NCBI GenBank assembly: GCA_028023455.1
Contig: JAQFVV010000001.1
Coordinates: 27,590,001 to 27,654,000, forward strand
Direction of reading: 5' to 3'
From: Epiperipatus broadwayi
Taxonomy: Eukaryota > Animalia > Onychophora
Length of the DNA: 64,000 nucleotides
Shown here piece after piece: positions 32,275-34,691 of this stretch. How positions within the stretch are numbered: position 1 is the first letter of the stretch; every line of letters begins with the position of its first letter. Position numbers and translations under genes: made by a program. Below the pieces are notes generated by a model. That model worked only from the letters and a program-made list of their open reading frames with translations, was not told the origin of the DNA and ran no database searches.

Positions 32275-32281
32275 TTGGCAG

Positions 32282-32287
32282 TTTATT
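32282..32287 (-). terminator. Poly(A) signal AATAAA of element B
   Basis: AATAAA lies 7 nt before the microsatellite junction. Confidence 0.65.
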
Positions 32288-32932
32288 TGGTTACATTTTT
32301 TCCTTTCTAAAAAATAGGAAAATAAGTACAATTTGTAGTAAAATTGACAAAAAGAAAAAATACATGATTAGTAATATTGGACAATTAAAATATTAGAAAA
32401 AACATTTTTTGATTACATATATCAATGGTTGAATTGTTTATTCTTTCTTTACATAGTCTAGTGTTAAGCTTTTATCCATTTATTTTGAATAAAAAAATAA
32501 TAAAGTTGTATTATTTATGGTGGTGCTTTCATTGAGACAGTATCTTGATCAGATTCTGTGTTGTATGTGGTATACTTCATTTGTGAATAATTAGAGTCTG
32601 AAGATTTCTTGTTCTTCTATTAATGTCTACTCCTGCCATAAATTTTTTTTGTTCTGGAGTGAGAGTGGCATCATCCAAGAGTGATTGTCTAGTCTTAGTG
32701 GCTGTTTGTGGTAGCTTCAGCTGGAGAAGTGCTGGGATTATTGGCTTTAAGTTTCTTTTTTAGTGGGATAGTAGATTTATTTTTGTTTGTATTGCAAATA
32801 GGATTACAATTCTCAGAAGGCATTTGTTGGTCAGCTGTCTTTGTGCTGCTGCTATTGATTTTCCTTTTCTTCCTTATCTTAGTCTTGTGTTTGTTGGCTA
32901 TTTGAAAGGGTGTATTGTCATCTGAGGTATTC

Positions 32933-34474
32933 TCATGATGTTCTGATGATGATGATGAGGTGTTTGTTTTCCTCCTCTGATTCTGTGGTTGTGTCAAGTG
33001 GTTTTTTATGTATAATTTTATCTTCTTTGGTTTTGATGATAGGATGATTATTGATTGAAGATTCTTTTAATAAGGAATGTTCAATAGTTTTTGATGATGA
33101 TGATATCTGTGTAAGTTTATCAGCTGGTGGTTCTTTATCGTTAATTTTATCTTGGTTAGTTTTAGTGATAGAGGGATTATTGATTGTAATTTGTTTTATT
33201 AAGGAATGTCCGATAGTTTTTGATGATGATGATATTTGTAAATGTTTTTCAGCTGGCAGTATATCATTGCTTTGTTGTTGCTTTGGAGATTTCGTACATT
33301 GATGTGGCTTTGTGATTTTAAGTCCACATTCAGTGCAAAATTTATTTGGGCAATTTTTTATTATATGAGTTCTTTCTTTGCATGAGAAACATTGAGGAGA
33401 AATACCTTTAAATGTTATAGTTAGCGGTGATGTTTCTGATGAATGTACCGTAGGAATATCTGTTGCGTTACTGTTTTTATTTAGAGTGAATGAGAACGTT
33501 GCTATATTTGTGAATAGAAGAGTCATAGCATTTTTGTTTAATTGATATTTAAAATCAGAGACGTTTCCGTATTGTTTAAGTAATAGTTGGAGATCTATTT
33601 CTGAGAAATCAATATGACATTTTTTAATTTGACCTTTTAATAAAAGAGGGCGCATAATATCGATATAGCAAATCATTTTTCCATTAAGGAATTTAATATT
33701 ATTTTTAAATATATTTTTTTGCATCTTGCTGTGAAACTCTAGGCATAAATATCTGTTGTTTGGATGGTCTAATATTTTATAAAGGTAATTCCATAGTTTC
33801 TTTTCCATTAGTAATTGATACAGTTCATCGATGGGAAGTTTTGTGAGATCACAATTACTATTTGTTACGGTTATTATGACAGATTTGTGGTTGTGAAATT
33901 TTTTGAAAGAGTTTAATAAATTTTGTGGAATGGTAGAGTGAAATTTTTCTGTATAATAGTCATATAATTCCGGAGTTATTTGTTGAGAGTTTGAGAAATC
34001 TGTCTCAATTGTTTCATTTTCATCATTTTCATTATCAAGATTAAAAGTATCTATAATATCCTCCGATGTAAGTTGAACGTTATTTACCATGCTTGCTGAG
34101 TAATCTTTAACAACTCTTGCATAAGTATTCCTGTTTGATAAATTTCCAGAATTAGACGACTTGGTTGGTGAATCATGTTTGATTTCACTTTTATTGGTGT
34201 TTTTAATTTGATTGCAGTTATTGATTTTATTATTTGTTAGATTAGGAAAATTTTTCATATTAACGTTAAGGCTTTCTCCACGTGATTGTTGTTCGGAGCT
34301 TTTTTCTTCGATTTGAAAAAGGCTTTCAGTTAGTGGCTTAATTTTATTAAATTTTTGATTATTTTTGTTACATGAATCTGGGTTAATTCCAGAATGAAAA
34401 TTGGAAGGATTGGTACTAGCTATCAAATTATCATTGATATCGTTGGATTGGTGAGGATTGCAAATTTCCTCCAT
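32933..34474 (-). CDS. ORF1p (gag-like nucleic-acid-binding protein with zinc knuckles) of element B
   Basis: Open frame (track 32933..34510 uses TTG; first ATG is at 34474). It contains CFSCKERTHIIKNC (CX2CX4HX4C) and CTECGLKITKPHQC. The core aligns gap-free with ORF1 of A. The natural C-terminus continues after a frameshift in 32695..32997 (PLKKKLKANNPSTSP vs A PVKKKMKATNTSP). Confidence 0.85.
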   Translation of the reverse strand: MEEICNPHQSNDINDNLIASTNPSNFHSGINPDSCNKNNQKFNKIKPLTESLFQIEEKSSEQQSRGESLNVNMKNFPNLTNNKINNCNQIKNTNKSEIKHDSPTKSSNSGNLSNRNTYARVVKDYSASMVNNVQLTSEDIIDTFNLDNENDENETIETDFSNSQQITPELYDYYTEKFHSTIPQNLLNSFKKFHNHKSVIITVTNSNCDLTKLPIDELYQLLMEKKLWNYLYKILDHPNNRYLCLEFHSKMQKNIFKNNIKFLNGKMICYIDIMRPLLLKGQIKKCHIDFSEIDLQLLLKQYGNVSDFKYQLNKNAMTLLFTNIATFSFTLNKNSNATDIPTVHSSETSPLTITFKGISPQCFSCKERTHIIKNCPNKFCTECGLKITKPHQCTKSPKQQQSNDILPAEKHLQISSSSKTIGHSLIKQITINNPSITKTNQDKINDKEPPADKLTQISSSSKTIEHSLLKESSINNHPIIKTKEDKIIHKKPLDTTTESEEENKHLIIIIRTS

Positions 34475-34545
34475 TATGGAAAATTTTAATGGGTTATTAA
34501 ACGACCCCAAAAAAGGTTATATTTAGGTAAGTGATATAAAAAAGG

Positions 34546-34554
34546 ACTTACCTG
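34546..34554 (-). promoter_or_regulatory. 5' splice-donor consensus CAG|GTAAGT in the 5' UTR of B
   Basis: Perfect consensus. G at 34551 is at the same offset from the 5' motif as in element A. Confidence 0.5.
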
Positions 34555-34681
34555 TTTGTTTGAAGATGTTTAATAGTACTTTATACAAGTGTTGTATCTA
34601 TAGAAGATAATAAAATAAACAGTAAACTTTAAAAAACATTGGTTTTTCTAAGAGCCAAAAAGACGTGCTTGTGAGGCAGAG

Positions 34682-34691
34682 CGGCCATCTT
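34682..34691 (-). promoter_or_regulatory. YY1-type motif AAGATGGCCG at the 5' terminus of B
   Basis: Matches the YY1 consensus AAGATGGC(G/C) and the motif known near the 5' end of mammalian L1. Confidence 0.6.

Follow-up and report, generated by a model that had tools for sequence, protein, structure and literature searches.

Element B of Epiperipatus broadwayi, a probable ORF2-deleted derivative of a (GTA)n-inserting LINE family

Organization of element B

The analysed stretch of DNA (hereafter the window) comprises 64,000 nucleotides (nt) of the onychophoran Epiperipatus broadwayi, corresponding to positions 27,590,001-27,654,000 of contig JAQFVV010000001.1 (C1) of a 5.6-Gb assembly; it is AT-rich, with a G+C content of about 25%. 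Two related long interspersed nuclear elements (LINEs), designated A and B, are both located on the minus strand of the window. The present analysis concerns element B, which a first-pass annotation, made from the sequence alone, had described as a retroelement restricted to the first open reading frame (ORF1), and its relationship to A and to a two-ORF family, B-FL, identified in the same assembly.

As that annotation had proposed, B was found to be a discrete element (34691..32276, read on the minus strand, to which all coordinates of B refer) with a 5' motif, a 217-nt 5' untranslated region (UTR) and an AATAAA signal at the 3' end. Its 5' end, AAGATGGCCGC, stands directly after a (GTA)n/(GCN)n microsatellite (34692..34775), which holds B and is at the same time the tail of the upstream element A. 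Tracts of (GTA)n are present immediately 5' and 3' of nearly all B and B-FL copies, and A copies are likewise flanked. The 5' end and the 5' UTR of B extend over 34475..34691, and the terminus is identical in 10 other B copies and eight B-FL copies. Within this UTR the sequence GTAAGT can be read at about 34551-34546. The 5'-terminal motif AAGATGGC(C/G)G is common to A (41194-41204), B (34681-34691) and all B and B-FL copies; we take it to resemble the YY1 core site near the 5' end of human L1.

The open part of ORF1 (32933..34474) begins with an ATG at 34474 and encodes 513 amino acids (aa), including a conserved core and a CX2CX4HX4C knuckle, as established from the list of open reading frames and by comparison with the ORF1 of A and B-FL. 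The remainder of an ancestral 655-aa ORF1, with the basic tail (32515..32932), is out of frame. Mapping against the intact ORF1 of B-FL revealed four lesions: codon 504 has lost 2 bp, codon 595 is affected by a 1-bp insertion and by a stop, and 4 bp are missing at codon 623. Owing to the first of these, together with the later lesions, the basic tail is read in another frame (ORF at 32695-32997). The ORF1 of the window copy is therefore not complete with an in-frame basic tail, as had been supposed. The tail region also contains a 129-bp tandem duplication (32998..33256; two 43-aa repeats, 82% alike), detected with Tandem Repeats Finder. This duplication is present in all full-length B and B-FL copies and thus predates the split between B and B-FL.

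Downstream of ORF1, alignment to B-FL and a junction pattern search placed a deletion junction, ..TGTAAAG|AAAGAATAAAC.., at 32446..32447, where about 3.45 kb of the parent, comprising all of ORF2, is missing. Behind it lies a 3' UTR remnant with the AATAAA signal (32276..32446), which is 86-87% identical to the last ~175 nt of B-FL. In the window copy the element ends with ..AAATAAACTGCCA / ..CCAAATAAACTGCCA and is followed by (GTA)n, either a tail or the target microsatellite, at 32117..32275 (Tandem Repeats Finder: period 3, about 50 GTA units). The terminal 18 nt (ATAAAATATATTTTAAAA) are lacking from the window copy and present in the 10 other full-length B copies and in the B-FL copies examined at the 3' end. 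Neither an apurinic-type endonuclease (APE) nor a reverse transcriptase (RT) was detected within 32276-34691, either in the list of open reading frames or in a Pfam scan, whereas A and B-FL have both, in agreement with the original observation that B holds no trace of these domains.

The degree of relationship to A had likewise been judged correctly, at about half identity in the core of ORF1 with UTRs that do not align. The ORF1 core of B is 46% identical to that of A over 345 aa (E 1e-106), and at the DNA level the alignment of the two elements is restricted to the ORF1 core (65% over 613 nt).

The two-ORF family B-FL

When the 2,417 bases of the element were used as query against the genome, the best candidates included a second set of matches (L012-L020) with 91-92% identity over query positions 173-2417, that is, positions 1-2245 of B, and with the same 5' terminus as B. 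Past position 2245 these loci run into ..gtatatct.. and an ORF starting with MDINITEINTRGLNSNERIHALSNW. In the 10-kb stretches fetched, the last ~175 nt of B recur about 3.45 kb further on, at 86-87% identity, and both elements share the 3' terminus ..CTGCCAATAAAATATATTTTAAAA(GTA)n. The matching first 2,245 bases and last ~175 nt, together with the same termini, indicate that B corresponds to B-FL without the roughly 3.45 kb that begin just behind ORF1 and end where the last 175 nt start. A two-ORF element that matches B better than A does has thus been found (about 92% over the first 2,245 bases, with the same 3' end), and B is not a deletion derivative of A, as the earlier annotation had held, its parent being a different family.

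B-FL is 5.88 kb long and possesses two ORFs, of 655 aa (ORF1) and about 1,131 aa (ORF2; range 1,076-1,132 aa). The Pfam domains identified in ORF2 are Exo_endo_phos (residues 9-208; 2e-14), RVT_1 (487-722; 2e-31) and zf-RVT (925-978; 6e-5). The intact transition from ORF1 to ORF2 was observed in 14 copies; ORF1 is open (655-656 aa) in seven of nine young B-FL copies, and both frames are open in one of the seven long stretches examined. In the core of ORF1 the window copy of B is 94% identical to B-FL. The closest solved relative of the B-FL ORF2 in the PDB is the human LINE-1 ORF2 protein (ORF2p; 9e-28), ahead of R2 proteins (about 1e-10), while a word-based homologue search with ORF2 gave two weak matches only, from which no clade can be named. 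On the strength of its domains and flanks, B-FL is classified as a predicted autonomous, (GTA)n-inserting, L1/Tx1-like LINE.

On contig C381 (60178-75300), three 5'-truncated B-FL copies (L025-L027) stand in the same orientation with a spacing of about 6.9 kb; the series may be a tandem array of B-FL or a duplicated block.

Copies of element B and their age

In the same search, ten further places matched B from end to end at 94-95% identity, and BLAST of the fetched loci showed the same first and last bases. A pattern spanning the deletion junction, which should be exhaustive for near-exact junctions, was then searched genome-wide and recovered eight and, in a second search, 11 B copies; the reversed-pattern control gave none in both searches. 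An extra match of the looser pattern, on contig C6197, fits via ambiguity codes only and looks like chance. The junction in L011 is too diverged for either pattern, and this copy was added by alignment. In total, B is represented by 12 copies on 12 contigs, 11 of them full-length and one 5'-truncated, and a single junction is found in all. The truncated copy, L039, consists of about 400 nt with an intact 3' end and with (GTA)n on both sides, which is the signature of target-primed reverse transcription.

Three of the copies (L002, L004 and L008) share both flanks at 92-98% identity and differ from one another by 0.8-1.7%; they are segmental duplicates or haplotigs. The other B loci have unrelated flanks beyond the microsatellite. 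Counting the three as one group, about 10 independent insertions can be recognised, so that B is not single-copy, and the full-length copies have the same 2.4-kb ends. An upstream flank common to L001 and L006 was considered as a further locus duplication and rejected, since this flank is the 3' part of A-family copies whose 3' UTRs and truncation states differ. Beside the elements (GTA)n often grades into (GGT)n or (GGC)n (L003 and L033, on the 3' side), and a 5'-nibbled B-FL copy, L012, abuts (GGT)n(GGC)n and not (GTA)n.

Most pairs of B copies differ by 3.8-5.4%, and the members of a sub-cluster (L002, L004, L008, L009 and L011) by 0.8-3.7%. Young B-FL copies differ from each other by 0.1-1.9% and from B by 6.7-8.9%, and older full-length fossils (L021 and L022) are 10-15% different from B or B-FL. 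In a maximum-likelihood tree of the 11 full-length B copies and the B-FL copies, B forms one clade (100/100 support) with a stem of 0.022 and terminal branches of about 0.02, within which nested sub-clades are supported (88/84, 99/94 and 100/99). The young B-FL copies are sister to it, on a stem of 0.032 and with tips that are very short. All full-length B copies are decaying pseudogenes, old and dead, whereas B-FL is young and mostly open. The simplest history is a single deletion in an element of the B-FL type and a modest amplification over about 1% divergence, followed by extinction, while the full-length lineage went on.

Decay of ORF1

ORF1 is broken in all 11 full-length B copies, with one to five stops or frameshifts each. 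Apart from 1-bp indels at codons 284 and 573, each lesion is confined to one copy or to the L002/L004/L008 group. All B copies are marked by two in-frame indels, a 3-bp deletion at codon 42 and a 3-bp insertion at codon 458, and no disabling lesion is common to the 11 full-length copies mapped, from which it follows that the founder of B probably had an open ORF1. The 1-bp insertion at codon 284 (L002, L004 and L011) was considered as proof that a broken master had been copied, and was rejected as homoplasy: it lies in an A6/A7 run and is missing in L008, the closest relative of L004. The indel at codon 573 is shared by L006 and L011, which are not sisters in the tree, and both indels read as recurrent changes.

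The changes private to one B copy amount to 54 synonymous and 185 non-synonymous ones (11 of them stops), a ratio of 3.4 against a site ratio of 4.0, which corresponds to neutral decay. On the stem of B-FL, 19 synonymous and 18 non-synonymous changes were counted (p = 0.0005 against neutrality), indicative of purifying selection; the stem of B has 11 and 22, respectively (p = 0.19 against neutrality and p = 0.15 against the B-FL stem). In the window copy the four lesions are confined to the tail, and selection on its ORF1 core was accordingly considered; this was rejected, the private changes (five synonymous, 15 non-synonymous) being neutral. Between A and B, the comparison of non-synonymous and synonymous rates (dN/dS) that had been suggested is uninformative, as synonymous sites are saturated (pS 0.75-0.77). 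The dN/dS of A against B-FL is about 0.09, a value that reflects long-term constraint in the autonomous lineages and says nothing of B.

The density of lesions provides a further estimate. About 29 lesions have accumulated in eight independent B copies over a summed terminal branch length of 0.17 (about 170 per unit), from which about five would be expected on the stem and internal branches of B (about 0.032) if ORF1 had been unconstrained there, whereas none is common to all copies. This would fit active masters that needed an open ORF1, and equally a deletion that took place shortly before the burst.

Origin of the deletion and spread of B

The left break of the deletion reads ..TGTAAAG|gtatatct. 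The right break reads ..gcataagg|AAGGAAAAAAAC in young B-FL copies and ..gcataaag|AAAGAAAAAAAC in the older full-length copy L040. In L040 the deleted segment would be GTATAT...CATAAAG, with GT at its start and, behind a T-rich tract, AG at its end; its removal yields the exact junction of B. The breaks also share a 5-nt microhomology, TAAAG. At the founding event a B-FL transcript may accordingly have been cryptically spliced, or the segment may have been lost through microhomology-mediated deletion or a template switch. Short contigs from runs guessed to be RNA cover parts of the element at 90-99% identity, and none of them bridges the junction with at least 31 letters on both sides.

It is very probable that B is a non-autonomous, ORF2-deleted derivative of the autonomous, (GTA)n-inserting, L1/Tx1-like family B-FL. 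A single event took out about 3.45 kb, from the end of ORF1 up to the last ~175 nt of the 3' UTR. The 2.4-kb form that it left retained the 5' end, the ORF1 and the 3' end of its parent and is found in (GTA)n tracts, its RNA presumably having been reverse-transcribed in trans by the ORF2p of B-FL-type elements. Copying by reverse transcription in trans fits the occurrence of about 10 independent insertions at (GTA)n loci and the 5'-truncated copy, and because the 3' end of B is that of B-FL and not that of A, B-FL would be the natural supplier of ORF2p. Several points weigh against this derivation. Among the best-scoring matches, from which the copy listing was also drawn, the extant full-length copies nearest to B reach only about 92% identity, which leaves the actual parent subfamily unsampled. 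Some of the 12 B copies may be haplotigs or segmental duplicates, L002, L004 and L008 being certainly related in this way. The mobilisation in trans is deduced from the structure of the copies, and target-site duplications are unreadable inside the microsatellite.

The reading first put forward was that of an old, self-standing ORF1-only family with its own selected ORF1 protein (ORF1p), taking ORF2p and target specificity from A in the manner of HeT-A with TART. It would account for a multi-copy element with fixed ends, for an ORF1 only 46% identical to that of A beside unrelated UTRs, and for the lack of a disabling lesion common to the B copies; by the density of lesions on the terminal branches, ORF1 was moreover kept open over about 3% divergence in the lineage leading to the copies. 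However, a two-ORF family about 92% identical to B and with the same ends exists, the B lineage is shallow (stem and terminal branches of about 0.02 each), its 12 copies are few and the full-length ones all broken, and selection on its stem is not detectable (22:11). The 3' end of B matches B-FL, not A, and the adjacency of A and B recurs with unrelated A variants and with other families. An independent origin of this kind is very unlikely. Even less credible is amplification at the DNA level only, by segmental duplication or as haplotigs of one ORF2-deleted locus: the flanks of L002, L004 and L008 are what it would predict, but the remaining copies have unrelated flanks past the microsatellite, the copies end precisely at the termini of the element, and the 5'-truncated copy with its intact 3' end has the signature of target-primed reverse transcription.

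The GT at the start of the deleted segment, the AG after a T-rich tract in the older full-length copy and the presence of exactly one junction in all B copies would also suit repeated by-products, in which a single B-FL source made spliced (GT...AG), ORF2-less transcripts that were each retrotransposed independently, in the manner of the spliced integrated L1 copies of man. In that case the same source should have left unspliced copies in at least equal number, yet no full-length copy with the diagnostic characters of B occurs among the best-scoring matches. The supported nested sub-clades within B are what would be seen had later copies been seeded by B copies or by an evolving B master, and with the junction lying within a 5-nt microhomology splicing is not needed, all of which makes repeated by-products improbable. 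The derivation from B-FL by one deletion can be carried further, to a true parasite of the HAL1 style that lived on a microsatellite-specific LINE outside the mammals and arose when cryptic splicing eliminated ORF2. Its masters would have needed ORF1p in cis (hence open over about 3% divergence) and would have competed with B-FL for ORF2p before extinction; this fuller version is doubtful.

What stands of the ORF1-only, HAL1-like lineage proposed at the outset is the multi-copy state, the fixed ends and the HAL1-like architecture; its status as a long-lived independent family does not, B being an ORF2 deletion of the ~92% identical B-FL. The opposite case, that of a close full-length family from which ORF2 had been deleted once at this locus, is also realised in part: the family and the single deletion were found, but the deletion did not occur at this locus and the deleted form has spread.

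Comparison with known retroelements

HAL1 elements are reported, in a statement of PMC5753468 that cites Smit 1999 and Bao and Jurka 2010, to have had several independent origins. The features of this type found in B are an ORF1 without endonuclease or RT, the ends of a two-ORF parent and amplification to dispersed copies. Like B, the HAL1s of mammals are non-autonomous LINE derivatives which keep ORF1 and the ends of the parent, lack ORF2 and are copied by an autonomous relative. In contrast to HAL1, B derives from a non-mammalian, (GTA)n-inserting, L1/Tx1-like family, and its ORF1p carries a CCHC knuckle and has no detectable similarity to the mammalian L1 ORF1p, while the ORF2 of the parent is a distant relative of human L1 ORF2p; B is present in 12 copies only, all full-length ones are dead, and selection on its ORF1 is not demonstrable. 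As judged from its organization, B appears to be a HAL1-like deletion derivative as a kind, and not HAL1 by descent.

Internal deletions bounded by GT...AG, arising from the retrotransposition of spliced LINE RNA, are known from the SpIREs, the spliced integrated L1 copies of man, which are described as dead-end products without parts of the promoter. The deletion of B resembles them in that it fits GT...AG in the older parent copy L040. Unlike SpIREs, B retains an entire 5' UTR and ORF1 and seems to have propagated, and microhomology explains its junction equally well.

HeT-A of Drosophila telomeres is not known to derive from TART by a recent deletion, and chromosome ends consist of arrays of the two. 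What A and B have in common with HeT-A/TART (and TAHRE) is the head-to-tail order of related LINEs in mixed arrays in which one member is without RT. The arrays described here are, however, internal, 27.6 Mb into contig C1 and at (GTA)n in many contigs, and the RT-less B is a shallow offshoot of a full-length family. A partnership with A of the HeT-A/TART type is thus not upheld, as the head-to-tail placement recurs with different partners and follows from insertion into (GTA)n.

Microsatellite-specific examples of retrotransposons without long terminal repeats (non-LTR) occur in the Tx1 and R1 clades. Such elements insert into simple repeats, as do B, B-FL and A, with (GTA)n on both sides of nearly all copies. 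More generally, target-specific non-LTR elements use rRNA genes and microsatellites (PMC4640811). In the families described here (GTA)n may be recognised by the endonuclease, or it may only be matched by the (GUA)n tail.

The case of B means that half-LINE derivatives with ORF1 only, a kind familiar above all from mammalian L1, arise as well in a LINE that targets microsatellites, here in an AT-rich genome of 5.6 Gb, and it offers a clean, datable example with one junction, 12 copies and a living parent. In annotation, B is best entered under B-FL as a deletion subfamily and treated neither as a family of its own nor as a partner of A, and head-to-tail arrays should be read as stacking at (GTA)n. 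B opens no new mechanism; how these families recognise (GTA)n is the wider and more interesting question.

Relatives of the ORF1 protein

Comparison of ORF1 with the PDB gave a match to the zinc knuckle only (E 0.12), and neither the PDB nor Pfam gave a match to L1 ORF1p. An exhaustive HMMER search with the ORF1 core returned three marginal matches, mostly to the zinc knuckle. Modelling of the core with AlphaFold2, from a three-sequence alignment, gave an unusable model with a mean predicted local distance difference test score (pLDDT) of 31.8. Look-alikes of ORF1 in the ESM Atlas fall into zf-CCHC and ZCCHC3-like clusters from cnidarians, arthropods and chordates, which can serve as a lead only.

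Element A and stacking at (GTA)n

Element A (35476..41204, minus strand) belongs to a separate, abundant family, of which it is a broken copy; its ORF1 lies at 39619-41019, and fragments of APE and RT were identified with Pfam at 36036-38659. Its 5' end follows (GTA)n and starts with CAAGATGGCGG. The family includes at least 24 near full-length copies at 95-97% identity, and 2,732 candidates were noted at first look; the RT core of A is 60% identical to the ORF2 of B-FL. A run of N (X in the translation) is located in the endonuclease region of A, at about 37890-37930, and part of the apparent breakage of A is a sequence gap.

The 3' UTR of the A family is not fixed. In the window, the conserved body of A reaches as far as a (TA)n run at 35476; the 700 nt from there to the (GTA)n tract (34776-35475, minus strand) were not found in other A copies and hold a tandem repeat of about 106 bp. 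The A copy at L038 has an unrelated 3' region of about 400 nt (L038:7153-7555), and both variants end with AATAAA..TTT(G/T)AAAA before the triplet repeat.

At L038 this A copy, which is 5'-truncated and carries the different 3' UTR, is located upstream of a B copy, and on contig C6212 an A copy precedes a B-FL copy by 1.85 kb on the upstream side. At L002 (3940-5423), L004 (4042-5425) and L008, the (GTA)n tail of B is directly followed by an element of a third LINE family; its 5' end is ..AGCCAT(A/C)TTGGCTCTTGACAGAG, and its ORF1 core is 64-66% identical to that of B at the DNA level. B adjoins A because every one of these families (A, B-FL, B and the third) inserts into (GTA)n and has (GTA)n at its 3' end, so that later insertions stack head to tail. 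Elsewhere in the window, at 1735-2457, a long (AGG)n tract of about 233 units is located within a strong G-over-C skew.

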